From Octopus sinensis (taxonomy: Eukaryota), in contig NC_042998.1 of assembly GCF_006345805.1 (NCBI RefSeq), positions 205,716,001-205,780,000 of the forward strand: 64,000 bases of DNA, written 5' to 3'. Of this stretch, positions 3,466 through 34,700 are shown one piece after another. Under the pieces are notes generated by a model that made no database searches, had not been told where the DNA came from, and saw only the letters and a list, made by a program, of their open reading frames with translations. The position numbers and the translations under genes are program-made. Numbering within the stretch: position 1 is the stretch's first letter; every line of letters begins with the position of its first letter.

Positions 3466-3681
3466 ATATTGATATTCAAAACAACATGAAAGAAATCCAA
3501 CCTGAATTCCACATCCCAGTCTATGTCGTATCAACTTCAACGAAATCCTGTATTTTGCCAGACTTTTTGTCATTTGATGATGTTTTGGAATTGTCTTCAG
3601 ATGCAATGGTAGATCCCTCTTTGAGGAAGCCATTACACATGTCGTCTTTGTTTTGTTATATCTACACATCAGGCACCACAG
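3466..3681 (+). CDS. SLC27A: SLC27A exon with first half of the ATP/AMP-binding motif
   Basis: tttacAG|AT...ACAG|GTaaat; 216 bp, phase 1-1; ends LFCYIYTSGTTG. Confidence 0.95.
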
Positions 3682-4059
3682 GTAAATCAACAGCTGCAAT
3701 TATTAATCACAGAATGCACGTTACACACACTATCCATTGTGCCTACACACACACACACGCACACACACACACACAGCTATACATGTGTACCTGTATCCTG
3801 AGTTGTTGTCTTCATTATTAATGCATTGTTAAACTCCAATGTTATATAAAAGCAATGAATATTGACGGAATCAGTTTACGTGTATAGTGAATAGATTAAA
3901 ATGATAGTCAACCTGTTTAGAATTATATGGATATATATTTAGAATAATAAACAGCAGAAAAGCATAAATTTAAGGGTAAAGATTATTCAACAGTCTTGAT
4001 TTGCCTAATAATGTGGGACACAGTGTGTGTATACTAATGTATGTGTATATATATATATA

Positions 4060-4093: not shown

Positions 4094-4485
4094 TTGCATG
4101 TATATATGTATGTATATCATCATCATCATCGTTTAAAGTCTGCTTTCCATGCTGGCATGGGTTGGACAGTTTGACTGAGGACTGGCAAGCCAGAAGACTG
4201 CACCAGGCTCCAATCTGATCTGGCAAGGTTTCTACTGCTGGATGCCCTTCCTAATACCAACCACTCTGAGAGTGTAGTGGGTGCTTTTATATGTCACCAA
4301 CATGAGACAAGACAGGCGGTACTGGCATCGACCCACTTGACTCAGCAGGTCTTCTCAAGCACAGTTTATTGCCCAATGACTGAAGGGTACTCTTAAATGG
4401 ACTGGTTATATAGCACTGGCATAGGGCACGGTTACGGTCTCACGTGGCTTGCTGGGTCTTCTCAAACACAGCATATCTCCAAAGG

Positions 4486-4545: not shown

Positions 4546-4808
4546 ATTATTATTGAGGGAATAAAATCCAAACTTACAAGGAAAAAAAAATTCAATTTAG
4601 AAATACTAAATCAAATTTTACACTATATAATATACATATATAAAAAATTAGAAAAAAACCCACCTTTTATCGATTCAAAATGAACAATTAAATTACACCA
4701 TCTAGAAAATTACATATAATAGAAAAATTAAAATTGAAATAACAATAAAATGTCAAAGATTAAGTAAATTGCAAAATTAATAATAAAAATGTATATAATA
4801 GGTAGAAA

Positions 4809-4895
4809 AATGACACGTGTTTCATGGCTATATTTAAGAAATGATTATAGTAGGAGAGAAATCACTTCGATATAAATGTAGTCGCTCATCAGGTT
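4809..4895 (-). ncRNA. Hammerhead ribozyme motif (HHR-A)
   Basis: Minus strand CTGATGA (4886..4892), partly decayed stem II, GAAAC-ACGT-GTC^ with palindromic ACACGTGT; weak stem I. Confidence 0.7.
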
Positions 4896-4938
4896 AAAAA
4901 TAAACTAGAACAATAAAATAATTAATTAATAAATATAC

Positions 4939-4980
<42 letters not shown>

Positions 4981-5276
4981 ATCCTAAATATACATAAGTG
5001 AAAAATAAAATAATACTTAAATAATTAAATACTTTAAAATTAAATAAAATACACAAAGCTATTACAAGTCATTAAATTGTAATCAAAATAAGAAATGGTT
5101 CAAATATAGACAAACTCCTTAAATAAGCTAACCATATAATAAATATTATACATGTGTAGTATCTATAGATTTAATATAACAATCTATAACAAAGTTGACT
5201 AAATATCAAATAATATAATACCTAATCAAAACTTAATATCAATTTATTTAATTTAATATTACAAATACATAAGCCA

Positions 5277-5321: not shown

Positions 5322-8054
5322 ATAAAAAGAGAGAGAGATATAATAATTAATATCTATCATCATCATCATTGTTTAACGTCCGTTTTCCGCGCTAGCATGG
5401 GTTGGACGGTTCAACCGGGGTCTGGGAAGCCAGGGGCTGCACCAGGCTCCAGTCTGTCTATCGTAACTAATATATATAAATATATATAATAGTGAGAGAA
5501 TAATATGTTAATGGAAAGTAAGAAAACCTATGAACCCCAAAATAAAGAAAGGTGCAAAAATATTAGAACCAAAGAACAATTCACTATGAAGATGTCCAAT
5601 CACAATCACCAGTCGTCTACAAAACCAGTGAATAACAAGAACAATAATAACAACGACCAAAGTCAAAATAATAACAAGATCTAACTAATATTGATAAACA
5701 AACTAAATTACTAAGTTCAGCGATTCTGTTAATCTATCGAGATTTTAAATGTATCAATATGATAAGCGTCTAATTAATATACTCAATCGATACCATTCAT
5801 GAATAATACAATCAAAAATTTGAAATAATACAAATATACTCAAATCCATTATATAAACTCGTTATATTAATATCCATGTGTAAGTCTATAGATTTAATAT
5901 GTCACACGATTAAAAAGTTAAACATAAACTTTATATTAAAATAAAAACTAGTTTATTTAAAAATAATACTATTTAATGAAAATATTATCTAATTATTAAA
6001 AGAAATATAGTCTAACAATATTAATTCTCAAATTAAATAATATGTAAAACGTTAGAATCTTTTATAACAATTAAACATTGAACGTAAAAAATACTATAAA
6101 TAAATAATAATATTACAACAAACAATAAAAATAATTTCAAACACACGATTCAATATTCAAATGAAATAGAGAAACGATAAAAAGTCAAACTTAGCTTAGC
6201 GAAGATTCAAGAGGAACTGATTTTGAAAGTAGATAGTTAAAGCGTTTATAAAATTTATTGTGTGGAGACTTAGTGCAAAGAAATAGAATAAATACTCAAT
6301 GAAAGTGGTGAAATATTTTTTTATCAATGAAAAATACGAAAAACCTAAAAGCCACATGAACTAAAAAAATTTGAGAAAAACACAACTTATGGAGAAACTA
6401 ATATGAAGACACCCAACTAAAAATAACAGACACCTATGAATATATCAATAACAAAATTAATCCCATCTCAATATTAATCCCCCGCCCCAAATCCAAATGA
6501 AAAGGAGAAAAGAACGTTGCTAAGTTATTTGAGAATATCGCTAGATTATAAACGTAAAGAATAATACTTAGTGTCTATAAGAAATAAAACTCGTGGAGAG
6601 GTTGCATAGGAAAATTAAAAAAGACTGTTAATGAAAAAGGCTAAAAGAAAATTATTAATGAAATACGGGAATTATCTAAACTTCATGAATCAAATAAAAT
6701 TAATAAAAATAGTAATAGTAAAAATAGTATATTAAGTATTACTTGTTCATCATCACTACCCAGATCCTACAACAAGCCATATGCGATTATAAGTATTATT
6801 ATCATTAATATTATAATTATCAACATAATTATTATCATTATTAATATCATTATTAATTATTACCATCACTACCAAAATCCAATCTACAACAAACTGCCAA
6901 CTAACGTCAAATTAATTCACAGCCGATTACCCCCCTACCATTCAACCCTTCCTATAGCCTCCAACAGACGAAGCCCAAAACTCATCTCAAATTCACCATC
7001 AACAAATATTATTCATCATTATTTTTAAAATATTAATATGATTTATAATAAAACAGTAAAAAATACTCTAATACTATTAAATAATATCTACAGTAAAATA
7101 AATAAGACAAAATAAGGTTTAATAATACTAAAGATAAGTTAAATGTAATATATAAGTACATAAAATAAAATATCATTTAATTTAAAAAAGTATTTACTAT
7201 AAATTTAAAGTCTAAATAATAATCAAATAAAATACATATATATAATTTTAAAATAATTTATATTACTATAATATTTATTTAAAAATAATATTATTATTTA
7301 TTTATCATTTAAATATATTATAACGGTACTTTAATTTATGTTTACATTTAAATATATTATAACGGTACTTTAATTTATGTTTACATTTAATTTTACGTTC
7401 GGCCAAAGAGTTTACCAATCACAATTGTTATGAAATAATATCTCCCTAAATTCATTATTACAAAGAGAACAACTATTACTCCCTATAGTATATGATTTAG
7501 CCCTACAAATAATATCCCAATTTAATTTATATTTAATAGATCTAAATTTAAGGTCCCAAATATATTTACTGAGACCTGTTGAGTTTATAAGATTTTTATT
7601 CCTAAAAGAATACATATGTTGGGAAATTCTATTTTTAATTTTATTCGAAGTAGACCCTATATAAATAGTATTTAAATTATGATGATTCAAATTCTAATCT
7701 ATTATAGTTACCCTACATCTATAGACTACATTATCTAAATTACAATAATTTTTCAATTTACATGTAGACTTATCCCTACATGTACAAGAAATCAACTCTT
7801 GGTTTTTATTATTATAATTAGAATTAATATTTAATCTATCTTTATAAAATTTCTTTAATTTAAAAATATTACATGAAGAAATAATATTAAATAAAATTAA
7901 ATAAAATACTAGCTTTGTGTATTTTATTTAATCTTAAAGTATTTAATTATTTAAGTATTATTTTATGTATATTTAGGATTTTCATATATATATATATCCT
8001 TAAATCCTTAAAAATGTTTCAGCCTGAAGGCCACGGCCATGCTGGATACCACCG

Positions 8055-8116
<62 letters not shown>

Positions 8117-8152
8117 GGTATATTTATTATTTTATTGTTCTAGTTTATTTTT

Positions 8153-8239
8153 AACCTGATGAGCGACTACATTTATATCGAAGTGATTTCTCTCCTACTA
8201 TAATAATTTCTTAAATATAGCCATGAAACATGTGTCGTT
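8153..8239 (+). ncRNA. Hammerhead ribozyme motif (HHR-B), inverted copy of HHR-A
   Basis: AAC-CTGATGA (8156..8162)...GAAAC (8225..8229)-ATGT-GTC^ (8234..8236)-GTT; 3-bp stem I. Confidence 0.7.
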
Positions 8240-8461
8240 TTTCTACCAATTATATACGTTTTTATTATTATTTTTGCAATTTACTTAATCTTTGACATTT
8301 TATTGTTATTTTAATTTTAATTTTTCTATTATATGTAGTTTTCTAGATGGTGTAATTTAATTGTTCATTTTGAATTGATAAAAGGTGGGTTTTTTTCTAA
8401 TTTTTTATATATATAGATATATGTATGCATAAATATATATATATGTATATCCATACATATA

Positions 8462-8515: not shown

Positions 8516-8949
8516 TAGATATAGATATGTTACATGTATCATCATCGTTTAACGTCCACTTTCCATGCTAGCACAGGTTGGACGGTTCGACGGGGGTCTG
8601 GGAAGCCAGGAGGCTGCACCAGGCTCCAGTCTGATCTGTCAGTGTTTCTACAGCTGGATGCTCTTCCTAACACCAACCACTCCGTGAGTGTAGTGGGTGT
8701 TTTTATGTGCCACTGGTATGAGCGCCAGTCAGGCGGTACTGGCAGTGGAAGAGGGGCCTTGCAAGTCTACCAGATAGATGGAAGAGCATTGTAGAAAATG
8801 AAGGAGAGTATATTTTAGATTAAAAAAGAACTTTATCTTAATTTTGAAGAATAAAAGAAGTATTTAAAAAGCCGCATTATTTGTAAGATGAACCAATATA
8901 TATATATATGCATATACTCTTGTACTTGTTTCACCCATGTGACTGTGGT

Positions 8950-9500: not shown

Positions 9501-10042
9501 AGGGAACAGTAAATGTTAAGGGAAACCCGTGCTGAGGCGGACTAACAAATTTATTTCAATTCTGTCAGTAAATTTTGTTTAAAATGTAATTTTTTCCCCA
9601 AATTTAATTGCAACAAATTGAGTAAAATGGCTGAGGGAGAAATGTTTGTGAGGATGGGGGTATCAGTGTATGACTGATAGACAGGTGTTGCCTCTTGCCT
9701 TGTTAGTTATAGTGAGGTCATGGGGAATATAATATCCTGCCATTAATGAATTAAAACTATTGGAGATAAACTCGCAATTCGTTTAATGAGCTGACACTAC
9801 TCCTTCCTCAATATGCTGCTTGCCTCCCACCTCTCTCGGCACCGGTTTCCCTTTGCAACCATTTCATAAGCGACAGAATTCATGAGAAATCCATTCCACA
9901 GCCTTTTTCTTTCGCACCAATTCAGTATAAATGTTTAGTTTCTATTTTGCGGGGGGGGGGGGGGGGGCGTCTCCTCCGACATGTTTCCTATATTCATGGT
10001 GATCTGATTAACAGTTGTTGTTTTCCTTCTTTTTCTGGTCAG

Positions 10043-10201
10043 GTGTTCCAAAAGCCTGTAACATCTACATCAGCAAACTCCTGGGAAGTTTACGCTTTGG
10101 CAACATCATTGGAATCTGTAACTCGGATGTTATCTATGTCACTCTTCCACTTTACCATTCAAACGGACTCTTTCTGGGTTTCAATTTGGCTCTAAGTCGA
10201 G
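10043..10201 (+). CDS. SLC27A: SLC27A exon
   Basis: tggtcAG|GT...CGAG|GTaagt; 159 bp; (G)VPKACN...SDVIYVTLPLYHSNGLFLG; completes YTSGTTGxPK across the junction. Confidence 0.95.
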
Positions 10202-10894
10202 GTAAGTTTGGCAGAATTATCGTTTAAGCCCACCAAATAACTTTTTGCATTCAAAATAATTTTTGAAATCCTTTGAAATTCAAATTCAAAAAGTTAAAAA
10301 TATTCACACGACCTATTATGGATTTTGAATTGAAGCTCATCATGGAACCAGTCCTAACTTTCTTCGTTCATCATCATCAAACATGCATTTTCCACTCTGG
10401 CATGGGTTGGATGGTTTGACCAGAGCTGGCAAGCTGGAGAGCGGCACCAGGCTCCAGCCTGATTTGGCATGGTTTCTATGGCTTGATGCCCTTCTTAATG
10501 TCAACCACTTAACAGAGCGTGTTGGGTGCTTTTTATGTGGCATTGGAACAGGACACTTACAGGTCAATCCTCTTCCCCATTGGGAGCAGCCTTAACACTT
10601 TTACTGTGGAGGATGGGGTTTCTTGAGTACAGCAAAGTGTTACCCATCTCATACACGTTGCTAGTTTCAGACATTTTCTGTGCATTTGTATTCTGCACAC
10701 TGTTCTCGCACAATTCTGCACAAAAACATTTTCACCCTGCCCCGTCCTTGCGGATACTCAAATTAGACTTGACCCGTATCAGTCATTCAGGTATTGATGA
10801 ACCTGAGGCCATTGCTAGGATTTATCCACAATGATTCAAAAAGAGATGTGTAAAAGATAATTTATTTTAATAGCATACTTTTCTGTTAACAAAC

Positions 10895-11293
10895 ACTCTT
10901 TACTCTTTTACTTGTTTCAGTCATTTGACTGTGGCCATGCTGGAGCACCGCCTTTAATCGAGCAACTCGAACCCGGGACTTATTCTTTTGTAAGCCCAGT
11001 ACTTATTCTATCGGTTTCTTTTGCTGAACCGCTAAGTAACGGGGACATACACACAGCAGCATCGGTTGTCAAGTAATGCTAGGGGGACAAACACAGACAC
11101 ACAAACACACATATATATATACATATATACGACGGGCTTCTTTCAGTTTCCGTCTACCAAATCCACTCACAAGGCTTTGGTCGGCCCGAGGCTATAGTAG
11201 AAGACACTTGCCCAAGGTGCGACGCAGTGGGACTGAACCCGGAACCATGTGGTTGGTAAACAAGCTACTTACCACACAGCCACTCCTGCGCCT
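10895..11293 (-). mobile_element. tRNA-head SINE, family A
   Basis: Minus-strand head AGGCGCAGGAGTGGCTGTGTGGTAAG...GGTTCAGTCCC with A- and B-box-like motifs; second long copy at 39698..40091 (+); several fragments elsewhere. Confidence 0.75.
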
Positions 11294-11399
11294 AATGTTT
11301 TTCTTCTTACACACACCTGCACTGAAACCCTTGTGAGAGGTGGGATCAGAATTTAAATTACAAAAAGTATTTATTTTTGTTTTCTTAAATCTCAGCAAT

Positions 11400-12115
11400 G
11401 GACCACTCTTGGGTGCATCATCATTCCATAAAAGGTTTTTATGGGGATAAGGAGTTTATAGCTACCCCTTTTCTACGTATTCAGCAAGGCCTCTTCTCTG
11501 AAGGTACCAGGATCCTGTCATCTTTTCTACTTACTAAAACTTTAATCTTTGGCAGTTTAACCTTAAGGCCCCTCAATTCCAGGTTTAGTTTCTCTGCCTG
11601 GAATTTCTTCTCTAATTCTTCTGTAGACTCCACTATGAGTTCTAGATCTTCAGCAAATAGGAGTTCCCATGAACAGCCAGTCTTAAACTCCTTTAGTGAT
11701 GGCTTGGAGGACTGAGGAATAGGAAGGGATTGAGGACTGAGCCTTGATCTACCCTTACCTTCACACTAAATTCATCACAGAAACCATTGCTAACTCTCCT
11801 TATACATAGCTTGAACCACCCGCAGAAGCCATTTAGCTACATCCAGTTTCCTCAGAGCCCACCAAATTACTGAACACGGCCCCCAATGAAATGCTTTCTA
11901 CAAAAGTGAGGTATGCAGTTTATTCTTAGCCAGTTATCTTTCCTGTGATTGTCCCCTGAAGAGGTACCACAGTTGCAATCTTCCCACTGAGACAAACCCA
12001 AATGGCATCACATCCTGGTTCGCTCTATCATGAATTATTCGGGTTGTGTCTTTCTCCATGGCCTTCATAACTTGATCTAGAAGTTTGATTCCCCTATAGT
12101 TGTTTCTCTCCAAGA
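11400..12115 (-). mobile_element. Decayed RTE LINE reverse-transcriptase fragment
   Basis: Minus strand NNYRGIKLLD and WELLFAEDLELIVES..ELEKKFQ, homologous to the RT at 57844..59253. Confidence 0.7.
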
Positions 12116-12124
12116 AATATCGAA

Positions 12125-12575
12125 ATCAAATTTGATGACTGGCACCTGTGCCAGTGGAGCGCTAAGAGCACCATCCGAGCGTGATTGTTACCAGAGGAGC
12201 AAACTGGCTTCCGTACTGGTGGCACATAAAAGGGCACCATTCAAGTGTGATCATTACCAGCGTCGCCTTAGTGGCACGTGAAAAAACATTCGAGCGAGGT
12301 CGTTGCCAGTGCCGCTAGACTGGCTCCTGTGCAGGTGGCACACAAAAGCCACCATTTGAGCGTGGCTGCTGCCAGTACCGCCTGACTGGCCCTCGTACCG
12401 GTGGCATGTAAAAGCACCCACTACACTCTCAGAGTGGTTGGTGTTAGGAAGGGCATCCAGCTGTAGAAACTCTGCCAGATCAGACTGGAGTCTGGTTCAC
12501 CAGTCCTCAGTCAAAATCGTCCAACCCATGCTAGCATGGAAAGCGGATGTTAAACGATGATGATGATGATGATGA
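12125..12575 (+). repeat. RTE 3'-UTR repeat ending in an (ATG)n tail; representative of about 18 dispersed copies
   Basis: Shared CCCACTACACTC..GAGTGGTTGG..TTAGGAAGGGCATCCAGCTGTAGAAAC...CCAACCCATGCTAGCATGGAAAGCGGA.GTTAAACGATGATG; the same sequence terminates the long RTE at 59816. Other copies near 320(-), 2200(+), 4115(-), 5355(-), 8535(-), 10370(-), 16400(-), 20450(-), 23030(+), 25200(-), 28810(-), 33650(-), 35710(+), 36200(+), 50655(-), 52250(+). Confidence 0.85.
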
Positions 12576-12850
12576 TATCATCTTTGCCCTTGTAATTTAC
12601 AGTGATACTACTCTGCCAGTCATTGGCTTTGAAACCGTTTCTGTTGGCTTCATTAACTAACCCCAGTGCTGTTCTTACTTCCCCACACATTTTAAGCATT
12701 TCTACAACTTCCTCCAATCAGCCGGCACCTTTCTCTCTCTCTCTCTCTTTATATCCTTGATTACTTTATCCACCACACTTAGATCGCAACTCCCATACAC
12801 TCTCCACATTCAGCAGACATTTATGATAAATAGTACTTCCACAACCAATT

Positions 12851-12888
<38 letters not shown>

Positions 12889-13401
12889 ACACATTACTTT
12901 AGTGGACCGGGTCCTTTGTATTGGTTTACCCTGTGCTTTGTAGCTCGATCCACTAAAGAGGCTTTTTTGTGAGTACTACTGGATTAGTTAAGTCCATATA
13001 TTGTGCATATATATATATATAATATATATATATAAAATTGTGGATTAATAATGGTTAAATACATCGTCTGTGAGTATGAAATCCCTCATCTTACCACTGG
13101 AAATGTAAATCTTCACTATGGATTAATTCACCTTTTCTGTGAAGCTAATAAGTCTTTAAAAACCTGTGATAAGTCTGTGCATCATCCTCCTCATATCTCT
13201 GAAAATTTAAATCTACACTATGGATTGATTCATCTTCTCTTCGAAACTAATAAGTTTTTAAAAATCTGTGATAAGACTGTGCATCATCATTAAGGAACTT
13301 TGGAAAACTGTTTACAACCTATATCTGCCTCTAATGGAACTATCTCCAATATTTCATGAGTATAACCTCACCCACTAAGATGTCTGGAGAACTCAAATGT
13401 A

Positions 13402-13492
13402 TTTTAGCTGATGAGTACGGGACACTTTTATCTGCTGCAATTTTTGCAACTTGTAATAAAGCCTGTCTTTGTATGAAACAATTGTACTAAAA
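13402..13492 (+). ncRNA. Well-preserved type I hammerhead ribozyme (HHR-F)
   Basis: TTTTAG (13402..13407)-CTGATGA (13408..13414)-GTACGGGACA...TGTCTTTGTAT-GAAAC (13475..13479)-AATT-GTA^ (13484..13486)-CTAAAA; perfect 6-bp stem I, intact core, palindromic ACAATTGT. Confidence 0.85.
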
Positions 13493-13520
13493 ACTAATCC
13501 ATTCTTGTTGCTTCTTTCTC

Positions 13521-13584
<64 letters not shown>

Positions 13585-13631
13585 GAGAGAGAGAGAGATG
13601 TCTGTATATGATTGCTCATTCTTTCTTGCAG

Positions 13632-13756
13632 GAGCTACAATTGTTTTGAAGAAGAAATTCTCTGCCTCAAGCTTCTGGAAAGATTGTTGCCAATACCAAG
13701 TCACTGCTGTTCCTTACATTGGTGAATTGTGTCGTTATGTTCTCTCACAACCCATT
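13632..13756 (+). CDS. SLC27A: SLC27A exon
   Basis: ttcttgcAG|GA...ATT|GTaagt; 125 bp, phase 1-0; [42 protein letters not shown]. Confidence 0.95.
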
Positions 13757-14309
13757 GTAAGTGTTTCGTGTTGCTTTCTTCAAAGAACTCCTTTTCATTA
13801 ACCTTTAGAATAATGATGATGATAATAATAATAATAATAATGAAATTATCATGTATAGTGCTCAGGTGCACTACAACTCATCAAAGGTGCACATACAGTA
13901 CATAGGATTGTGTACAAAAGTTGACAGGCAATGGGTGGTGGTCACCCTTTTCGAGCAGAGGAATGACTCTAGCAGTTTGTATGTTTGCACAGGTGAGTTT
14001 TGTTGAGTTTTAGAATAATTGAGAATTTGGGAACTATTTAAGAAAGTAACTTTTTTTTCATCATAAATTTCGATTTTTGGGAGATAATTAAAGAAAATAT
14101 AAAATTATGGTGGAAAGCTGTTGTTATTCTCTAACAGTTAATAAAACTTGCCTTGGTTGTATTTTTAGTTGAAAAGTCAGTGTTTCTTCTCCAGTGGTTG
14201 TATTCAGGGTCAAACCTAAAAAATACTAAAATTAACACAATTTAAACTCACATAAAAGAAATTTAGGATTCTTTTATTACCATATTTACATAATAATAAT
14301 AATAATAAT

Positions 14310-16048: not shown

Positions 16049-16240
16049 ACAACTTCAGAATCCTTACATCAAGTGAGACTTATGTATGGAAATGGATTGA
16101 GTAAAGATATATGGAGCAAGTTTCAAAATCGATTTCATATTCCTCGAATAATCGAATTCTTTGGAGCCACTGAGGGCAATGTTCTGTTGATCAATACAGA
16201 GAATAAAGTTGGTGCCGTTGGACGAATATCACCTTTTTTG
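16049..16240 (+). CDS. SLC27A: SLC27A exon
   Basis: cttttcAG|ACA...TTG|GTaaga; 192 bp, phase 0-0; RLMYGNGLSKDIWSKFQNRFHIPRIIEFFGATEGN...GAVGR. Confidence 0.95.
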
Positions 16241-18936
16241 GTAAGACTAATTTTTATCTCTTGGCCTCAAAACCATATAAGAGAGTGAGATTATGTGGTA
16301 TTCATTCATTGCTTATGTAACAGCAGATGTCATTGAATCCCGCTCCTTTCTTTCTCACCCTTTCATCTATTCACAATATCAAAACTCTGCAACATTATCA
16401 TCATTATCGTTTAACGTCTGTTTTCCATGCTGGCATGGGTTGGACGGTTCGACCGGGGTCTGGGAAGCCAGTAGGCTGCACCAGGCTCCATTCTGACCTG
16501 GCAGTGTTTCTGCAGCTGGATGCCCTTCCTAACACCAACCACTCCGAGAGTGTATTGGGTGCTTTTTTACGTGCCACCGGCACAGGAGCCAGAGGGGGCT
16601 GGCATCAACCATGATCAGATGGTGCTTTTCGCATGCCACCAGCATGGGAGCCAGTCAATACAGTGCTTTTTACGTGCCACTGGCACAGAAGCCAGTCAAG
16701 GCAGCACTGGCATTGGCCATATTCAGATGGTGCTTTTTATGTGTCACCAGCACAGGGACTACAACTACAATTTCCATTTGATGTTGATGTACTTGACTCA
16801 ATAGGTCTCCTCAAGCACAGCATGTCACCCTACAATCCAAGGAACTTTTAAGTGGGCTGGTTATGCGACACTGGTGTAGGTTACAGCTGTGGACTCACTT
16901 TATTTGCTGGGTCTTTGCAGTCACAGCATATCGCCAGAGCTCTCGGTCTTTTATCATTGCCTCTGTGAGGCCCAATGTTCAAAGGTCAGGCTTCACCACC
17001 TCATTCCATGTCTTCTTGGGTTTCCCTGTGCTCCAAATTCCTTCCTGTTAGGATGTGACACTTCTTCACACAGCTCTCCTCGTCCATCCGTAGTACATGA
17101 CCATACCAACGCAAACGTCTCTCTTGCACGCCACATCTGATGCTTCTTATGTCAGGGGCTGGTATTGAACCTACCTGTATGCAATCTCACCATCTTATCA
17201 CTCTACCCCTCTTTCCCACCACAAGACCTGTTTGCTGTTCCTGTCCTGCCAGTCATCACTCCATCTTCCCAAGTCACATGTTATTCACCATTATCCAACA
17301 ATCTTAATCTTCCTCTCACACTAAACACTTTCTACTCATATTCCCTTCATCCCTTTACGCTCTTTCCTTCTTAGGGTCCTTACCGTCAGTAAAGTGACAC
17401 AACACAGAGGGCTGAGCATGTTTTACTCTTTCAAAATGGAAAACAGTCCTACTAATAATACTGGTATCATAAAAGAAATACACCAGAACATTCTGTAAAG
17501 TGTTAAGAAGTGCATCCAGCCATAGAAACGGTTCACCACCACAGGTGCAAGGACCCCATCTCCCTCCTGTATTTCATATTTGGCTTTCTTTTTTGACCCC
17601 AACCACTTTACGGAACATACTGGAGGCATTTTAGGGTGGCCCCATCAGATATAAGTGGTGAGTCAGTCTAATTGACTAACTGCCCCTCCCCTCAAATTTG
17701 TTGGCAATGGTAATAATAATTGTTTCTAATCTAGGTTCAAAGCTAAGGTCACTTTGCCTTTCATCTCTTCAGGATCGATAAAATAAGTACCAGTCATCCA
17801 CTGGGGTTGATGTCACTTATTCCCTTTCCTGAACTTGCTGGCCTTCTACCAAAAAGTTGAAACCATTATTATTATTATTATTATATCTGAGGGTGTTGAG
17901 CTAACAGATTTGTTGTTATGCCAGGCTAAATGCTTGGCAGTATTTCATCTGCCTTCCAAGTTCAAATTCCACCGAGGTCGACTTCGCCTTTCATCCTTTC
18001 GGGGGTCGAGAAAATAAGTACCAGTTTCACACTGGGGTTGATGTAATCAACTAGTCCTCTTCCCCGCCCAAGTTTCAAGGCCTTGTGCCGAGAGTAGAAA
18101 TAACAACAATCAGAACAATAATAATTATTATTATCTGAAGGTGGTGACTTACCAGAATCCTTATCACACCAAGCTGAATGCTTTGCAGTACTTCACCTGT
18201 GGCTACATTCTGAGTTCAAATTCTGCCAATGTTGACTTGACCTTTCATCTTTTCGGGGCCAATAAATTAAGTACCAGTGGAACACTTAGCTCAGTGTAAT
18301 TGACTAGTCCCCTCCCCCGCAAAAAAAGAATTTCAGGCCTTGTGCCTAGAGTAGAAAGGATGATTATTATTATTAAAGTTGGCAGCGTTTCCTCTGACTC
18401 TTTCCATCCGAGTTCAAATTCTGCCAAAGCTGACTTTGCCTTTCATCCTTTCAGGTTTGTTAAGGACCAGGTAAACAGTGTGTGTGATGGTGGTGGGTCA
18501 ATGTCAAACAGTTATATCCGAACTGAGAAGCCTGAAGACTGCTCTGAGTTGCAGTGTTTTCTCTGGTATGATTTCTACAGCTGAATACCGTTCCTCGTGC
18601 CACCTACTTTATAGCATGGACCTGGTGCTTTATTCATGGCACCAGCATTAGTGAGGTCACCAAATGACTTGCAAGAGAATCCCCCCCCCCCTCAAGTAAG
18701 GTGGAGTGATTAATGCCAGGTATTGAAATGCTACAGTATGATAGGAAGACAGGAATAGGTGTCTTCTGAAAAGGTGGTTCATGGCTTCTTCAGATTCTAA
18801 AATAAGGATGAGATGCCAGATATTGGAATCCTTTTCACCAGACAGCTACCCCTCCCCCCCCCACTCAATGTGTACCTTTGTGAGAGAATGTCAGAAATTT
18901 TCTTTTAATCAAAGTGAATTTATTTTGTTTATTTAG

Positions 18937-22559: not shown

Positions 22560-23575
22560 GCTCGCAAGGAATGAAGTCAGTATGCTCCGATGGATGTGTA
22601 ATGTCAGTGTGCATACTCGACAGAGTGTAGGTACCTTGAGAAAAAAGTTGGACCTAAGAAGCATTAGATGTGGTGTGCAAGAGAGATGACTGCGCTGGTA
22701 TGGGCATGTGGCGAGAATGGATGAGGATAGTTGTGTGAAAAAGTGCCACACCCTAGCAGTTGAAGGAACCTGTGGAAGAGGTAGAGCTAGGAAGACCAGG
22801 GATGAAGTGGTGAAGTACAACCATCAAACTTTAGGCCTCACCAAGGCAATGACTAGTGACCGAAACCTTTGGAATATGCCGTGCGTGAGAAGACCCGGCA
22901 AGCCAAATGAAACCATAATCTCATGGCCTATGCCAGGGGTGTAACCAGTCCACTTATGCGTAACCTTTTCCTTCTTTGGACTCTAAAACTCTGCTTGCGA
23001 AGACCTGTTGAGGCAAGTGAAATCAATCAAAATCGATGACTGGCATCTGGGCTAGCAGGGTGCAAAGACCACCATACGAGCCTGATCATTGACAGAGTGG
23101 TTAACCGGCTTCTGTGCCAGTGGCACTTAAAAGACACCTTTCAAGCGTAATCGTTACCAGCGTCGCCTTACTGGCACTTGTGCCCGTGCTAGTAGGGTGC
23201 CAAGAGCACCATCCAAGCGGGATCGTTGCCAGAGCAGCCAACTGGTTTCCGTGCCAGTGGCACATAAAAGAGCACTATTCAAGCGTGATCGTTACCAATG
23301 TCACCTTACTGGCACCTGTGCTGGTGGCATGTGTAAAAAGATTCAAGCGAGGTCATTGCCAGTACCGCCTTACTGGCCCCCGTGCCGGTGGCACGTAAAA
23401 ACCCCCACTACACTCTCAGAGTGGTCAGCATTAGGAAGGGCATCCAGCTGTAGAAACTCTGCCAAATCAAGATTGGAGCCTGGGGCAGCCATCTGGTTCG
23501 CCAGCCCTCAGTCAAAATCGTCCAACCCATGCTAGCATGGAAAGTGGACATTAAACGATGATGATGATGATGATA
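22560..23575 (+). mobile_element. 5'-truncated RTE LINE (ORF C-terminus, 3' UTR, ATG tail)
   Basis: ARNEVSMLRWMCNV...LRWYGHVARMDEDSCVKKCHTLAVEGTCGRGRARKT; similar pieces at 1520..2420 (+), 33650..34480 (-) and 36050..36560 (+). Confidence 0.85.
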
Positions 23576-24433: not shown

Positions 24434-24632
24434 GAGAAACGGGGCTGCTTTTGAATGAAATCATCCCCAGATTTGATAACAAGATCTATAAAGGCACCAA
24501 AGACTTGGATAATCAAAAAATTGTGACAGATGTGTTGAAAAAAGGAGACAAATTCTTCAACTTTGGAGATGTACTCTTCTTAGACAAAGATTATTTTGTT
24601 TACTTCAAAGACAGAATTGGAGACACATTCCG
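24434..24632 (+). CDS. SLC27A: SLC27A exon with first half of the FATP/VLACS signature
   Basis: cttgtAG|GA...TTCCG|GTatat; 199 bp, phase 1-2; ends GDKFFNFGDVLFLDKDYFVYFKDRIGDTFR. Confidence 0.95.
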
Positions 24633-24677
24633 GTATATAATTTTCATTTTAATTACAGATACATACATACACTTGCA

Positions 24678-25067: not shown

Positions 25068-25870
25068 TTTAGAAAGTACACAAGGTTAAGTCATAAATAT
25101 AAATATACACACATATATACATACATAAATACATATACCTACACTTAAATGTACATGTGTATGTATATGCATACAAATGAATCAATTATTATTAGATGCA
25201 TTATCATCATCATCATTTAACGTCCGTTCTCCATGCTAGCATGGGTTGGACGGTTCAACCGGGGATCTGGGAAGCCAGAAGGCTGCACCAGGCTCCAGTC
25301 TGATCTGGCAGTGTTTCTACAGCTGGATGCCCTTCCTAACGCCAACCACTCCAAGAGTGTAGTGGGTGCTTTTTACGTGCCAGGCAAGGCTGGCAACGGC
25401 CACGATCGGATTGGTGCTTTTTACGTGCCACCGGCATGGAAGCCAGTCAAGGCAGCGCTGGATTCAGCCACGTTCGGATGGTGCTTTTTACGTGCCACTG
25501 GCAGAGGGATCACAACTGCAGTTTCCATTGATTTTTGTTGTTGGTGTACTTGACTCAATGGATCTCCTCAAGCACAGGGTTGAAACGGTGTTTCTTTACT
25601 TGCCACCTGCACAGGAGTCAGTCGAGCGGTCCTGGCAACTGCCGGGTGCCAGTCATAGGATTGGTTCAATTTTGATTCCGATTTCACTTGCCAAATATAT
25701 TATTCATATTAGATAAAATATAAACAGAGGTATGAGAAAGTTATTAGAAGAGGAGTAATATTGTAACTTATAAAATCAATATATCTTAAGATTATTTTAG
25801 TTATATAAGAATGAAACTATATACATGAGGAATACACACACACACACATATATATATATAATAAAATATT

Positions 25871-26255
25871 AGGGAATAAATCCAAACTTACAGGGAAAAA
25901 TCAGATTTAGGATTGAATCCAATTTTATTGTAAAATATTATATTAAATTAGAGATAAAACCACTATTAGGCAAATCATACAATGAAAATCTTAAGCCAAT
26001 ACATAAGATTAATTAATTTATATTATTTAAATATATATCAAAATTATTAAAAAAGATAATTAGTATAACACTACGATCGTTTCATGGCTGTCCAATTCTT
26101 AAAATTTCGAGTTACAGTCATTCTTCAGATGGTTTAAATATTTAACTTAGCGAGGTTTAATCTTTAAATAATATAAATTAATTAATCTTATGTATTGGCT
26201 TAAGATTTTCATTGTATGATTTGCCTAATAGTGGTTTTATCTCTAATTTAATATA

Positions 26256-26259
<4 letters not shown>
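25871..26259 (-). mobile_element. Miniature non-coding PLE derivative: terminus, 97-bp perfect inverted repeat and hammerhead loop
   Basis: Arms 25935..26031 and 26163..26259 are exact reverse complements; terminus motif at 25871 is shared with 4556 and 688; flanked by TA/CA microsatellites. Confidence 0.75.
26069..26131 (-). ncRNA. Hammerhead ribozyme motif (HHR-C)
   Basis: Minus strand CAT-CTGAAGA (26122..26128)-ATGACTGT...ACAGCCAT (7/8 pairs)-GAAAC-GATC-GTA^GTG; palindromic ACGATCGT. Confidence 0.75.
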
Positions 26260-26292: not shown

Positions 26293-29200
26293 TATACATA
26301 TCTACATATATATTTCTGTGCAAACATACTCATAGGTACATATGTATTAGATGTGTTTAGAAGGGAGGATTAATGCAACAGTTCGTATCATTATAATTAT
26401 AGCAATAATACACAAACATATATTCATATAAACATGCAATTTGTTTATTTCTCCGTTATTTTTTTGTTGAAATCCTGCCGGAAATGGGGAAGGATTATTT
26501 TTGTTCAGTCGCGTAATCTAATTGGTCATCTGTTGTTTTGAAAGGCCTTGACTTTGTTTTGGTTGGTTAATTGATAACCGATAACATAAAACAAATTAGG
26601 CAAATATAGATATGAATTTAAGGTTAAAGTGATATTACTAAGGGGATATTATTTTTAATAAGGTAAGTTATAGCAAATTTATTTAAAAAACATTATATAA
26701 TATTACTAAGGGGATATTATTTTAATATAATGCATATGTGAGATAAGTTATTACAAATTTATTAAAAAACCTTTATAAAATATTATATGTATAAGTCTAA
26801 CTAGGGGACTCATTAATATATTTCCTAACTTATATGGAAAAAATATGGTTAAAAATACATGCCGGAAACGAGTTGGACCAAACTCAAACAAGGGACAAGA
26901 CATCAAAAGTGACTGTATACATTGTCTCTTCATGTTGTCATTAATTGCTAAAATTATGCCCCAAATTCCTTCTCCGAATCCTCACATATCCTTTTCTATA
27001 TATAACTATACCTGCATGTAACCAAATTGTAGTCATTATCGCCAAAAATATGTTCAAAATCAATTATATCTGACAAATTGCTTCAAATGCAAGACTCCAT
27101 CCGACAAAATGCCTAAAATGCAATATTCCATGTAATATTGTTAAATCCCTTAATTAATAAACCCTTTATACACACACACACACACTTGCATACACGTGTG
27201 TCATGATCATCTTCGTTTCAACATCCGCTTTGGGTCAGGTGGAGTTTAGTGAGGCTGATTTTGCTGTCCCCTTCAATCCATCCAGGGATCAGCATCTCTG
27301 TCCAGCATGGAAAATGAATGATGCTGATTGTGTTTGTGTGGGCATCATTATGTAAGAGTGATGAAGTAGATTCAAATATATTTGACACAATACAACCATT
27401 ATCTGATGTAGAACTCAATATGCTGGGTTGAGTGATTGCATATTTTGTTCTGTCAAAGGCCGACAGTCTACTCTTGAGTCTGTGCTGTTTACACTTATGA
27501 ACAACCCAGAGGAGGGTGAAATTCCGAGTACATTGTCAGCTTTGGAGATATGTATGTGTGAGTGTTTGTACACACACACACAAAACCAGCTTCTTCATAG
27601 TTTCTCTCAGCCAAAATCCAGTCTTTAATTGATTGGTCAACATGAATGTTTTCTAGAGGACAATTACCTCATTTAGAGGGCAGCAGAACTGAAAGCAGAC
27701 TTGGCAGACTTATTACCTCCTCCCAATTACAATGCCTCTGCTGCACCTGAGCACTGTAGACAATAATTTAATTATTATTATTAATATTTTTTCCATTCTA
27801 AGTTCAAATCTCACTGACGTCAAATTTGCTTTTCATTCCTCCGAGGTCAATAAAATAAAATACCAGTCGAAGTATTGGGGTTGATATAATTGAAGCCACC
27901 TCCTCTAAATTACTGGCTTTCTTGATAATAAACAAGAGTCACAAAAACTAAAATTTTGAAAACTTTTCTCAACCCATCACAGAAATCAAAAGGCAGGATT
28001 TCTTTTTTACCTCAGTTTTGAGAAGTGAACAAGGGAGACAATCAGTCTCTTGTTTCCCCATCTTCCCAGACTCTGTTGTTAATGGCCACACTGAGCCGTC
28101 TCAGAATGTTGTTGTTTTGAGAGAGAACAATATTTATATTTAGTTCTAGGCAAACCCTGATCAAGCAGACTTGAGATCAAACATATTCCAGTTATGACCA
28201 TCCTGCTTTTTTTTTTTTAAATATCTTAAATTGCATTTCTTAAAAGTGGCCTTTATGTGTTTATGGTTACGCCATCACTTTAAGACTTCCCCCTAGACTC
28301 TGGTTGCAGGAGGAACAACTGAGGTACACTCAACCAGAACACTGGTTTTTCTCAGCTCTTCTGTAAATATGGATTTTCAAAGGTTTGTGTTGGTAAAAAA
28401 GTTGTGTTCTTTGTATTTTCTAACAAACTTGTATTTTGTCATTTGGACATTGGTCTGTCTTTCTCCATCTTTCACACAAAACCATTTGAACATTTCTGCA
28501 CTAAATTAGAATTTTTTTTATATTCTACAAATATAGAATTTTGGCTTCATTTACAACAGATTTCTGGATTTTAAGATATTTTCCCTCAAAGATAATTTGG
28601 AATCTACCTTAGTTACTAAATTCCTATGTTATCTCAGAGGTAGGAGCTCTCTGAACTTTGCCCAATCTATTCTTATTCTCACAGCTAAACTTTTGTCATC
28701 TGGATAACGGAAGCTATCAACTACCTCTAGCTTACCCACCTGACAATTGATGCAGTCTATTTTCTCTACATTTTTTAGTGTTTATTGTACTTGTATACCT
28801 TCCACCCATCATCATCATCATCATCAATTAACGTCCGTTTTCCATGCTGGCATGGCTTGTAAGGTTTGACTGAGGTCTGGAGAGCCAGAGGCTGCACCAG
28901 GCTCCAATCTGATCTGGCAATGTTTCTACAGCTGGATGCCCTTCCTAATGCCAACCAGTCATTGGGTATGTCGTGTACCACCTGATTAACTAATAAAGTG
29001 ACTAGACCATAACCCACACCACCAGATATTGTTGATGTTTTCATATCCTTCATGGCTTTGTCTACAACACTACTGTCTATTTGGATTGCTTCTCCCTTTG
29101 TTGGATCGACATGAGGCAGACTCTCCTTCTCCCATGTGTTCTCTATATTTAGTAGCCTTCATAGTGACACTTCCAGGTCTCTTTCTTTGCAAGTGAACCA

Positions 29201-29670
29201 CCATCCATGCGAACACATGTTTCTCCCACAACATCACAATTTTCCTTGACAAACTTCTTCCTTTTTGCTAACAATAATTGCTTCTTCGCTTCCCTTCTGG
29301 CTGTTTGCTACTACCACCCTTCCAAGCTTGTTTCTTTGCCCTGATAGGCCTGTCAACTATATTGTTCTACCACCATGTCACCTTAGGTCTGGCTGGGACT
29401 TTGCACCACCAAATAATAACATTAAAAGAAATTAAAGTTTAATAATAAATATTTATCTTTTATTATTTTTAACACTTATAATAACTGATTATTTTGAAGT
29501 AAGTCGAAAACCCATGTATTTCTGTTTGAGCCACGATGCTGTTAAGCTTAAATATTTTGATATTGTTTATAACAATCTGTGGTGTGTTTCACAAGGTTTT
29601 CTCACAGATTTAGTCAACTATTATCTTTTACAGATCTTTATCATTCAGTCTTGTTATTTTCATTTTGCAG

Positions 29671-29768
29671 ATGGAAAGGAGAAAATGTGGCCACACAAGA
29701 CATAACTGAAACTTTAAGAGACATCAGTTTCATTCAAGATGTTGTTGTATATGGTGTGGAAGTCACAG
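29671..29768 (+). CDS. SLC27A: SLC27A exon
   Basis: ttttgcAG|A TGG...ACAG|GTaaac; 98 bp, phase 2-1; WKGENVATQDI...VVYGVEVT completes DRIGDTFRWKGENV. Confidence 0.95.
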
Positions 29769-30384
29769 GTAAACTATTTCTTTTTTACCACTTGAATGGA
29801 CAGATAACCAAGACAACTTTAGAGCTAATCTTATGAAGTTTACATGGGATAACAGTGGATGTCCTTTCTGATAAGCTGACATACAGATAAGACATGTAAA
29901 TGTCTGTTTAATGCACTTGGCTGTTATTTCTAGCAAAGCCTCCTTCTGTTGGTGTAAACAAGACAAATGGCTGTTTCTGATGGCATTGTTTCACAGTTGT
30001 GTGTGTGTGTGTGTGTGTCTACATAAATATGTCTACTCCTACTTGCTTCTTTCTGTGTGTGTGTGTGTGTGGTGTGTGTGTGTGTACTCCTACTTGCTTC
30101 TTTCTGTGTGTGTGTGTGTGTGTGTGTCTACTCCTACTTGCTTCTTTCTCTGTGTGTGTTCCTGCCAGTCTTACTCTCTACTTCTCGTCCCAACTGCTGT
30201 AATCCAATTCTTTTTTTCACCAGAACGTTGTTGTTGGCCGTTCAGAAACTTCTTTGTTTTTTCCCCCCTAATGTTGTAGATTTACCAGATCCAATCCAGT
30301 TGTCGGCCTGTCTGGCAAGTAACCCAATCTAATGACAAACATTTTCAAAAGATAATTAACTTTCCATTTAATCTCTCCATCCAG

Positions 30385-30701
30385 GTTATGAAGGCCGAGC
30401 CGGCATGGCCTCTTTGAAACTCGAAAATGCAGGAGCTTTGAGTAAGAACCAACTTGAAGTTCTCTACCAACACTGTCAAAAGAAATTACCAACTTACTCG
30501 ATTCCACTGTTTTTACGAACACAAAAAGAAGTTTACCTCACAGGAACTTTTAAATATCATAAACCAAAACTTCAGAAAGAAGCTTTTAATCCAGAACTCA
30601 TCTCAGACTCTCTCTATTTTCTCAACCGATCAGCCATGTGTTACGTTCCACTATCAAACGACATTTATTTGCAGATCTTACACGGTGAATTTAAGTTATA
30701 G
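30385..30701 (+). CDS. SLC27A: SLC27A terminal coding exon
   Basis: ccatccAG|GT TAT GAA GGC CGA GCC GGC ATG; GYEGRAGMA...PLFLR...TGTFKYHK (catalytic Lys)...LHGEFKL* with stop TAG. Confidence 0.95.
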
Positions 30702-31764: not shown

Positions 31765-34700
31765 CCATTTTTAAGTTATAATGGCAAAAGTGTGTGCGTG
31801 TGTGTACATGTATATTACCATTCTGAACTTGTAATGGTAACAATATTAAAACTGCTGATAACCCCCCCACACACACACACACACTTTTCTGCTCCAGCTA
31901 AATTTTTTACTTTAATTTCTGGGATTTGTTTTTTAATATTTTTTATTTATTATTTCCCAAATCAAATTCCAAAAGTTTTTCTTCAAATTCAGACAATTTA
32001 TTTTCTCTACAGGAAAACCTAGTCTTGTCTTAAAAATTCTACATTTCCTTTGGCTGTGATCCGTGGCTTTTATTTTCATTTTCTTGCAATGTTTTTATTC
32101 TTTCAATCATCAATCACTTTTTTTTGTAAAATTCTGCTTTCTCATGATTTCAACCAATTTTTCAAAAATGAAACAAAAAAAAAATTTTTTTAATGTTTTT
32201 ATATTTCAGCTCTTCAAGTTTATAATTAAAAACATTGACTGTAATTAATACAATTATTTTTCCTCCAAAAATGTAATTAAATCTTTGAATGCTGCAGCTG
32301 GTCATGTCAGTAGAGTGTCAACATCCAAGTCATAATAACACTAATCCCAGCTGCTAATCCACTAATCCTGTTGCTAAAACCTGTGTCTCACTGAGCTGGG
32401 GAAAGTAAGCAGTGGGAGTACTAGAGTTGAGGAGTGCTTTTGCAGGCCAACACTACTGAGATTCCAATCCTGCCATAGTTTGATGAGGAAGCTCCAATCG
32501 TCCTCCAGTTAATAGGGTGGCTAATTACCCTCACTAATCAGTGTTTATGATGAAGGCAAGTGAAACAATTAAGCCTGACCCTGCAAAAAAAAAATAGGGC
32601 ATTGTCCTTTTTAAAACAGTATTTTTACATCGTTTATTCTTAATTGTAGGTCAGCCCTGAGTAGATGAAAGGTATTCCAGCTATAATCATGTCTTTTGGA
32701 GGGTATCCTTAAGACAGCTATTTCTAGCAAGTAGAGACTTTCTGGTTGACTTGTGTTTTAATTAGCAGCAAATAATTTCATCTTCAGGATTCTTTAATTA
32801 AACCAAAACAATTTTTATATTTTTTTTCCCTTTGAATCTTTTTATAAATTTTACAGGTGAAGGGATTTCAATGACTCAATTTGAAAACATTCTGCCCCAG
32901 CATGACCACAGTCCAGTGAGTTTAGAACCACAACAAAGATGCTTCCAAATAATTTTTGTCCACCCTACTCTTGTAAACCTTAATCAAACAGGTTTATGAC
33001 CAAAAAGCATTCCACCCATGGCCATCCTGTTTTTCTTTTTAATAATAATAGTGTACAGTAGTAGTCTTCTTAGAAGATGGTAGGTTGTGATTTGAGGGAT
33101 GTTTGGCTTCCATTTCTACCAGGTCAAGCCACCTGACTCTCCCCATTGTCCTATACACACACACACACACGTAAAAGTTTGTCACTGGGATTCTTAAAAC
33201 AATTAACTTTTATCAGTTTAGGATTCAATTCTAAATTAATTGCAGTCAACTTTTTCTTACAGTGATGCTTCTTTCAAATGTTTCACTGCTGAATCTTAGA
33301 CATTTTTCAAAACTTTTTGAGCTTCAACTTAAAATTCTAAATAGCCTCCATGTGTCAGTTCCACTTTCATGGAGACAGACTGATGCCCTCACTAGAAACA
33401 CCAGTCTATCACGGCAGACTTCGACAAAAACACTTGATGTTAGTCGTGTATAGAACTGTAAATTCGGTTTGGAGAAGAAGGAAAAAAAATTAAATAACAA
33501 CAAAAACCTTTAAATGTTAAACTTTTTTTTTTTTTTTGAGATTAGTTCGTCCAATGGACACAACACATGTATATGCACGTGTGTGTATATATATATGTGT
33601 GTATGTATATATATGTGTGTGTATATATAATATATATGTGTGTATATATATCATCATCATCATTTAGCGTCCACTTTCAATGCTAGCATGGGTTAGACGG
33701 TTCAACTGGGGTCTGGGAAGCCAGAAGGCTGCGCCAGGCCTCGTCTGATCTGGCAGTGTTTCTACAGCTGGATGCCCTTCCTAACGCCAACCACTCCGTG
33801 AGTGTAGTGGGTGCTTTTTATGTGCCAGACGAGGCTGGCAAACGGCCACGATTGGATGGTGTTTGTTACGTGCCCACAGCACGAAGGCCAGTCGATGCGT
33901 TACTGGTTACAGCCATGTTCGGATGGTTTTCTTATGTGCCACCGGCACTAGTACCACAAAAATGCAAATTCCATTGATGTTCATCGATTTTGATTTGATT
34001 TGATTTTCACTTGCCTCAACAGGTTTTCACAAGTAGAGTTATGTGTCCCAAGAAGGAAGTATGCACAGGTGCACTGACTATGTCTCAGGTAGGGGCCATG
34101 GGTTACGGCCTCATGTGTCCTGCCGGGTCTTCTCACGCACAGCATACTTCGAAAGGTCTCGGTCTCTGTTCATTTCCTCGGTGAGACCTAAAGTGCGAAG
34201 GTCGTTCTTCACCACCTCATCCCAGGTTTTCCTGGGTCTACTTTTTCCACAGGTTCCCTCAACCGCTAGGGTGTGGCACTTTTTCACACAACTATCTTCA
34301 TCCATTCTTACTACGTGTCCATACCAGCGTAGACGCCTCTCTTGCACACCACATCTGATGCTTCTTAGGTCCAACTTTTCTCTCAAGGCACTTACACTCT
34401 GTCGGGTATGAACACTGACATTACACATCCAACGGAGCATACTGGCTTCATTTCTTGCGAGCTTACGCATATCCTCAGCAGTCACGGCCCATGTATATAT
34501 ACATACATATATATATACATATACACATACACATTTACACACACAGATTCTTTTCTACACTTGGCACAGGGCCTGAAATTTTGGGAGAGGGGGCCAGTTG
34601 ATTAGATCGACCCTAGTATGCAACTGGTACTTAATTTATCGACCCTGAAATTATGAAACGCAAGCTCGACTTCAACGGGATTTGAACTCAGAAAGTAAAG

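Follow-up and report, generated by a model that had tools for sequence, protein, structure and literature searches.

Type I hammerhead ribozymes are described from metazoan genomes in non-LTR retrozymes and in the pseudo-LTRs of Penelope-like elements (PLEs) (RF00163; Cervera & de la Pena 2014, 2020). Their helix II has about 4–8 bp and a small loop, and a short helix III of 1–2 bp with a small palindromic loop is a trait of these hammerheads (PMC4209133). Invertebrate hammerheads in which helix III consists of 2 bp and a 4-nt palindromic loop can be active as monomers (PMC7229834). Single-copy activity in vitro is low for minimal PLE variants and for metazoan type I variants whose helix III is very short. 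The described families carry a G–C closing pair and either conserved loop1/loop2 nucleotides with tertiary contacts or the min-HHR layout, and 10.1–11.1 is the most conserved pair after 15.1–16.1 (PMC3088659). In the genome they occur in multiple copies, in a tandem array with repeats of ~170–400 bp or in a pseudo-LTR that flanks an RT/GIY-YIG ORF. Solo monomers are common in introns (e.g. ~43% of Xenopus copies), and compared with intergenic DNA, introns are depleted of retrozyme copies (bioRxiv 10.64898/2026.07.22.740005). For Octopus spp., old Penelope-like (Naiad) remnants with a target preference for (TA)n have been reported, and some of these remnants carry hammerhead core halves, termed 'HHR_half_core', that lie 35–50 nt apart and fit no stem/loop descriptor (Craig et al. 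2021, PMC8557442).

Hammerheads are also known from host transcripts. The amniote hammerheads of RECK, CTCL and DTNB are type I motifs that lie in sense in introns of protein-coding genes (de la Pena & Garcia-Robles 2010). They are ultraconserved across birds and mammals, with tertiary loop contacts kept and scores of bona fide hammerheads, and a role in mRNA biogenesis has been hypothesised for them (reviewed in PMC6155905). The discontinuous hammerhead in the 3' UTR of rodent Clec2 (Martick et al. 2008, cited in PMC6155905) is a conserved type III ribozyme with an insertion of 150–1500 nt in helix I and with shown activity. The intronic CPEB3 ribozyme is a further precedent for a ribozyme in an intron (PMC10274809).

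In the window analysed here, 64,000 nt of Octopus sinensis DNA, direct reading of the sequence finds the hammerhead ribozyme consensus spelled out in full over 91 nt of the plus strand (13402–13492). The order is UUUUAG, CUGAUGA, a 60-nt helix II arm, GAAA, C-AAUU-G-U-A and CUAAAA. The motif is type I hammerhead-like, with the following parts.

13402–13407, plus strand: 5' strand of helix I, UUUUAG; pairs perfectly with 13487–13492 and is also aligned as helix I by Rfam RF00163
13408–13414, plus strand: core box C3–A9, CUGAUGA; exact consensus
13415–13474, plus strand: helix II arm, 60 nt; from sequence, folding and Rfam alignment
13475–13478, plus strand: core box G12–A14 with A15.1, GAAA; from sequence and Rfam alignment
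13478–13485, plus strand: helix III, ACAAUUGU; from sequence and folding
13485 and 13486, plus strand: U16.1 and A17, respectively, by consensus numbering
13486–13487, plus strand: predicted scissile bond A17/C1.1, from consensus numbering and Rfam alignment
13487–13492, plus strand: 3' strand of helix I, CUAAAA; from sequence, descriptor scan and Rfam alignment

All conserved type I core residues (C3-U4-G5-A6-N7-G8-A9, G12-A13-A14, A15.1-U16.1 and H17) are present. Three helices flank the core, of which only helix I is open while the other two are closed, and this topology is reproduced in the Rfam alignment. A first-pass annotation of this DNA had described the core nucleotides (CUGAUGA, GAAA, GUA) as canonical, stem I as a perfect 6-bp helix of UUUUAG with CUAAAA, and stem II as about 10 bp with wobbles and an inner UGCAA/UUGCA hairpin. 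All three descriptions hold, and the core boxes at 13408–13414 and 13475–13478 are aligned as such by the Rfam type I model. The helix II arm comprises 10 bp and one bulge. Its base consists of 4 bp (G·U, U-A, A-U and C-G) followed by a bulged U at 13470, above which a 6-bp stem GGGACA/UGUCUU is found (G·U, G·U, G-C, A-U, C-G and A-U), and the distal part is an imperfect hairpin that contains the UGCAA/UUGCA element. The palindrome that the annotation assigned to stem III, the 8-nt ACAAUUGU, is present as well; as a helix it was too generously read, since in the monomer only 2 bp (A-U and C-G) and an AAUU tetraloop form. The 8-bp duplex is available only to an RNA dimer, and the window holds no second copy.

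With the metazoan hammerheads of retrozymes and PLE pseudo-LTRs the motif shares the type I topology, the CUGAUGA/GAAA/GUH core, the 6-bp helix I, and a palindromic 4-nt loop on a 2-bp helix III (PMC4209133, PMC7229834). The other elements differ. The 60-nt helix II arm is far from the 4–8 bp of these families, has no counterpart among the described metazoan families, and, against 10 nt in the model, enters the Rfam alignment as an insertion of 56 nt. The 10.1–11.1 pair is a G·U wobble (G13415/U13474) and not the G10.1–C11.1 closing pair of type I hammerheads. A loop1/loop2 tertiary contact is not recognisable in the motif, whose helix I is a plain 6-bp stem without an internal loop. A long spacer between CUGANGA and GAAA is shared with the Naiad 'HHR_half_core' cases, as is the association with (TA)n target sites (PMC8557442). 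Unlike those cases, the motif has all three helices, and no Naiad ORF or pseudo-LTR was identified with it. A large insertion in one helix and a location within a host transcript are also features of the Clec2 hammerhead, which in contrast to the motif is of type III, has its insertion in helix I and lies in a 3' UTR (PMC6155905).

The Rfam Hammerhead_1 model (RF00163) aligns over its full length (1–45/45) to 13402–13492 on the plus strand with 19.4 bits when a 116-nt slice is searched. This is below the gathering score of 34, and the E-value in the 116-nt search is 0.014. No RF00163 match is obtained in a 301-nt slice, nor in the whole-window scan at gathering score. Scaled to the window on the basis of 232 nt × 4227 models, the E-value becomes ~8 over all families and, if only the hammerhead models are counted, ~2e-3 to 1e-2. 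At this rate, tens of comparable matches would be expected per 2.5-Gb genome.

Our own descriptor (exact core, helix I of at least 5 bp, helix II of at least 4 bp within an arm of at most 70 nt, helix III of at least 2 bp) returns the motif as the only match on both strands of the 64-kb window. In Markov-1 simulations, any loose match occurs in 2 of 2000 windows and a match as good as the motif in none of the 2000. CTGATGA occurs 18 times in the window. Given these 18 sites, a conditioned simulation over 3.2 million contexts yields 3.8e-3 loose matches per window, 8.4e-5 with helix I of at least 6 bp and helix II of at least 7 bp, and ~6e-6 once the requirements include a helix III that is short and palindromic throughout. 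Because real DNA is more hairpin-rich than a Markov chain, junction shapes were counted with any core sequence. Three-way-junction shapes number 235 in the window vs ~136 simulated (1.7x), and those with a palindrome 59 vs ~12 (5x). The corrected chance expectation is ~1.4e-4 per window for the stems as observed and ~2e-5 with the palindrome, or roughly 1–5 per 2.5-Gb genome. This descriptor-based value lies below the Rfam-based figure because eight extra helix II pairs receive no credit in the Rfam model. Within a single window the motif stands out as real and as rarer than chance predicts, yet across a genome it falls in the twilight zone.

The predicted folding of the RNA does not favour the hammerhead. 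The MFE of the 91-mer is -14.0 kcal/mol and belongs to a different fold; in the nearest-neighbour model the best hammerhead-compatible structure has -10.7 kcal/mol, 3.3 kcal/mol above the MFE. The hammerhead-constrained ensemble amounts to ~7e-4 of the total. Within the 91-mer, helix I is paired with a probability of ~0.4, the base of helix II with ~0.6 and helix III with ~0.02, and with native flanks of 30–100 nt the probability of helix I falls to 0.19–0.005. The MFE fold contains one competing local element.

13471–13487, plus strand: rival local hairpin GUAUGA/UUGUAC, from the MFE fold

GAAA and helix III are both locked up in this hairpin, as is the cleavage site. The duplex of two copies of the helix III palindrome is predicted at -8.4 kcal/mol. 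The MFE z-score is 0.00. A miRNA or other stable hairpin was considered and rejected on this value, and the miRNA matches in the 301-nt slice are TA-microsatellite noise.

The first-pass annotation had called the ribozyme apparently intact. This was an overstatement for a motif that scores 19.4 against 34 bits, with its hammerhead fold at +3.3 kcal/mol. The G·U at 10.1–11.1, the long helix II, the lack of an evident loop1/loop2 contact, the 2-bp helix III, the disfavoured predicted fold and the single copy in the window argue against an intact and functional ribozyme. The structural features point to slow, minimal-hammerhead behaviour at best.

The motif could be a chance match, in which an AT-rich intron meets the short hammerhead consensus and was never a ribozyme. 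We hold this to be a real possibility, though one that we would accept only tentatively. The score lies far under gathering level, where tens of such matches are expected per 2.5 Gb, and Perreault et al. have cautioned that large databases will yield fortuitous matches to the consensus (PMC3088659). AU and GU pairs are abundant in the stems, the z-score and the disfavoured fold fit such an origin, and the motif is a single copy in a window that is 1.7–5x richer in junction-like shapes than the simulations. Two other hammerhead-like spots of the window have no Rfam hammerhead match. Chance does not easily account for the stem quality beyond what Rfam scores, however, since a helix II of 10 bp, a helix I paired in 6 of 6 positions and the 8-nt palindrome bring the expectation to 1e-4 to 2e-5 per window. 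Nor does it readily explain why helices I and III have specifically the architecture known from type I hammerheads of metazoans (PMC4209133). As it stands, the motif mainly illustrates that a hammerhead consensus may look complete and yet fall in the twilight zone, here with 19 bits, a single copy and a weak fold. Genome scans should demand support from a repeat family or an orthologue before a hammerhead match is named a ribozyme.

The DNA around the motif bears on an origin from a mobile element. Two features are relevant.

13039–13521, plus strand: block of ~480 bp with the motif near its 3' end, between (AT)n at 13007–13038 and (TA)25 at 13522–13571
13097–13288: tandem duplication just upstream of the motif, with a 102-bp unit, 1.9 copies and 86% matches

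The block may have been inserted long ago into a TA microsatellite. As (TA)n tracts of at least 7 units are found 21 times per 64 kb, i.e. every ~3 kb, the TA bracketing hints at such an insertion only weakly. No sequence similar to 13289–13512 is present elsewhere in the 64-kb window, and this segment has no tandem partner. Copies of the motif block are absent from the window, from 21 kb of O. vulgaris and from JGI metagenome contigs (pattern scan, 0 matches). The long ORFs of the window show an APE/RT LINE and an AMP-binding exon and nothing else; no Penelope-like ORF is recognisable near the motif, nor is there a pseudo-LTR. Within 64 kb we find neither tandem repeats of ~170–400 bp around the motif nor pseudo-LTRs flanking RT/GIY-YIG, unlike the setting of the described retrozyme and PLE hammerheads. 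Neither the 64-kb window nor the O. vulgaris locus of 21 kb, together 85 kb of octopod sequence, contains a canonical hammerhead at or above the Rfam gathering score. A derivation of the motif from the 102-bp tandem repeat as a diverged copy, suggested by similarity in MAFFT, was rejected with a local score of 16 vs 17.2 +/- 2.6 for shuffles.

The reading that we favour, to which we give about an even chance, is that the motif is a solitary type I hammerhead-like relic of a retroelement, neutral and catalytically weak, that sits passively in an intron of an octopod SLC27A/FATP gene. It would be what is left, in decayed or variant form, of the hammerhead at the 3' end of a retroelement that inserted long ago, e.g. 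a Penelope-like pseudo-LTR or a solo retrozyme monomer. This reading agrees with the match of core and helices to the consensus, with the full-length Hammerhead_1 alignment, and with a chance expectation of ~1e-4 per window for such stem quality. The 6-bp helix I together with the 2-bp helix III and its palindromic loop is a hallmark of metazoan retroelement hammerheads (PMC4209133, PMC7229834), and intronic solo monomers are common (bioRxiv 10.64898/2026.07.22.740005). The genome is that of an octopod, and Octopus spp. carry (TA)n-preferring Penelope-like remnants, some with separated core halves (PMC8557442); the motif lies 29 nt from (TA)25 in a block bracketed by TA repeats. Weak predicted folding and the lack of a second copy fit a relic and not a working device. 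The relic reading has to be weighed against the absence of any other copy of the block, of a Penelope-like ORF or pseudo-LTR nearby and of a gathering-score hammerhead in the sequences given above, against a 60-nt helix II that is rare among described hammerheads, and against the frequency of TA tracts, which weakens the bracketing.

For a relic of this kind, the 60-nt helix II arm, the G·U at 10.1–11.1, the missing tertiary loop contacts and the 2-bp helix III would lead to slow cleavage, if any. We expect such cleavage to resemble that of a minimal hammerhead at high Mg2+ or to proceed as a dimer, and a lone intronic copy would have no partner for dimerising. The motif would then be a neutral passenger that does not measurably affect splicing. 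This neutrality is expected because the motif is weak and alone, because slow hammerheads spare splicing and because retrozyme copies are under-represented in introns. A single, below-threshold and oddly built copy without a sign of function is most likely either a harmless remnant of a mobile element or a fortuitous match, and not a regulator of splicing.

The host gene is represented by the following features.

10204–13631, plus strand: host intron of a SLC27A/FATP-like gene, ~3.4 kb; from tblastn exon map and sequence
13522–13571, no strand assigned: (TA)25, then (GA)n at 13571–13598; from repeat analysis
13630–13631, plus strand: acceptor AG; from sequence
13632–13759, plus strand: downstream SLC27A/FATP exon with donor GT at 13760; from translation and tblastn

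With two FATP-family proteins as queries, tblastn places exons on the plus strand at ~3573–3710, 10039–10203, 13632–13759, 16049–16237, 24565–24636, 29669–29773 and 30381–30500. The exon upstream of the host intron ends near 10203, and the exon at 13632–13759 has 70% identity to a fish FATP3-like protein. An AMP-binding exon is present among the long ORFs of the window. The gene (3573–30500, plus strand) extends over >27 kb, with exons of ~70–190 bp and introns of 0.6–8 kb that are rich in SINEs and microsatellites, and the exons for its N terminus are probably to be found upstream of the window. Among the top-ranked protein matches there is no cephalopod SLC27A orthologue, only bivalve and vertebrate relatives of at most 47% identity, and the best of these top-ranked relatives are bivalve proteins with 46–47% identity. 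O. vulgaris proteins are present in the searched collection, yet no cephalopod SLC27A orthologue was returned. For ORFs in and near the locus, no exact matches are on record.

The tblastn exon map and the exon translation confirm the sense orientation of the motif and its position upstream of a SLC27A 3' splice site, as first annotated. The predicted cut after 13486 lies 145 nt upstream of the acceptor AG. The positions given earlier for this cut, for the (TA)n(GA)n tract behind it and for the acceptor at 13630–13631 agree with the sequence. On the 3' side the motif is followed by 29 nt of unique sequence, (TA)25, (GA)n, a short pyrimidine tract and the acceptor AG.

This position had led to the proposal of an active ribozyme, tolerated or exapted, that cuts the nascent intron co-transcriptionally 145 nt before the acceptor, close to the branch-point region, and tunes splicing or the SLC27A mRNA output. 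Its canonical core, sense orientation and proximity to the 3' splice site agree with this proposal, and precedents exist in the amniote RECK, CTCL and DTNB hammerheads (PMC6155905), with which the motif shares the sense orientation, type I and an intron of a protein-coding gene as well as the hypothesis of a role in mRNA biogenesis, and in the CPEB3 ribozyme (PMC10274809). In contrast to the amniote hammerheads, the motif is without the features of fast cleavage, namely loop1/loop2 contacts, G10.1–C11.1 and a stable helix III (PMC4209133, PMC3088659). Introns cut by a slow hammerhead were spliced normally and only a fast ribozyme aborted processing (Dye 2006 and Fong 2009, as summarised in PMC2995048). 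Retrozyme copies are moreover depleted from introns and not recruited to them (bioRxiv 10.64898/2026.07.22.740005). A tuning of splicing or mRNA output is unsupported, and we consider an active ribozyme in this regulatory role very unlikely.

A further version of an active motif takes the helix II arm as its starting point. The motif would be a catalytically competent member of an undescribed type I subclass with a long helix II in cephalopods, in which the 60-nt arm replaces the loop1/loop2 contact, and it would be kept in the SLC27A intron because a co-transcriptional cut ahead of the branch site influences splicing or the amount of transcript. We regard this version as highly improbable. 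Were the motif active and conserved, it would mark the first link between an intronic hammerhead and a cephalopod gene. It would also show that a hammerhead can accommodate a very long helix II, with a bearing on ribozyme domestication.

A UGAUGA box beside a 6-bp terminal stem, upstream of a 3' splice site, is also what an intron-encoded box C/D snoRNA would present as its C box and terminal stem. Weak Rfam C/D matches are found on the same strand (DdR5 with 13.4 bits, sR35 with 11.7 and SNORD74 with 10.6). All of these scores are far under the gathering scores of 41–70 bits, with E-values of 0.7–10 even in the 116-nt search, and ahead of the 3' half of the terminal stem the sequence lacks a CUGA D box. 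Because the D box is missing, we reject the snoRNA reading, whose probability we take to be close to nil.

The repeats of the window identify an octopod genome. The only RT in the window belongs to an APE-type LINE, 43 kb from the motif.

56840–59253: LINE fragment with an Exo_endo_phos_2 endonuclease ORF and a 469-aa RT/PHD-finger ORF

The RT ORF of this LINE (57844–59253) has 78% identity to an Octopus vulgaris protein, whose locus on chromosome OX597814.1 holds a copy of the element with 84% identity over 2 kb. Another close match at the protein level (69%) is labelled as a Herbaspirillum MAG protein and is most likely a eukaryotic contamination of that bin. Several SINEs show 80–90% identity between the window and the O. 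vulgaris OX597814.1 locus. A SINE-like family of ~300 bp, which also occurs in this locus, has at least 16 copies on both strands with 70–91% identity.

SINE-like copies, first half: 319–493, 4116–4288, 5355–5456, 8538–8712, 10368–10542, 12270–12571, 16393–16820, 23389–23572
SINE-like copies, second half: 25093–25577, 28810–28960, 33649–33981, 35715–35996, 36267–36659, 50658–50788, 52402–52708, 59503–59822

Several of these copies contain CUGAGGA boxes, which could mislead a search for hammerheads by eye.

A very loose scan of the window returns further CUGANGA...GAAAC-palindrome-GUH arrangements at 26128–26072 (minus strand), 4892–4800 (minus strand) and 8156–8250 (plus strand). With this very loose descriptor, 4 sites are found vs 0.72 expected. 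None of the other spots has an Rfam hammerhead match, even in slices of 121–171 nt. One of them lies in a 325-bp palindrome and two in an inverted repeat, so palindromic boxes are expected there. A family of hammerheads with a long helix II within the window was therefore considered and discarded on poor stems, the lack of Rfam matches and the lack of sequence similarity to the motif. A tandem array of GAAAC-palindrome-GUH boxes spaced by ~560 nt (26083, 25525 and 24959) was likewise dismissed, its middle box being inside a SINE copy.

The inverted-repeat pair 4625–5064 / 7907–8422 has 92% identity over ~370 bp, with the arms 2.8 kb apart and no ORF of note between them (4.6–8.4 kb). Each arm contains CUGAUGA, 68 nt and GAAAC-ACGU-GUC, which in the 8.2-kb copy has decayed to AUGU at the CpG. 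The boxes face outwards, (TA)n is found ~30 nt on the inner side of each, stems I and II are poor, and neither has an Rfam hammerhead match. The 325-bp near-palindrome at 25935–26259, whose arms share 79% identity, is part of the intron that separates the exons at ~24.6 and 29.7 kb. Its minus strand (26128–26072) reads CUGAAGA, 38 nt and GAAAC-GAUC-GUA, with a weak helix I and no Rfam hammerhead match. Two repeat copies at 35805–35900 and 36477–36570 also carry hammerhead-like boxes, but have no GAAA after the first hairpin. They start with CUGAUGA or CUGACGA, continue with an AGCC-UUCU-GGCU hairpin and later contain the palindrome CCAUGCUAGCAUGG and AAAAC/AAAGC. Both copies adjoin long TA/TG-rich microsatellites at 36.6–37.2 kb.
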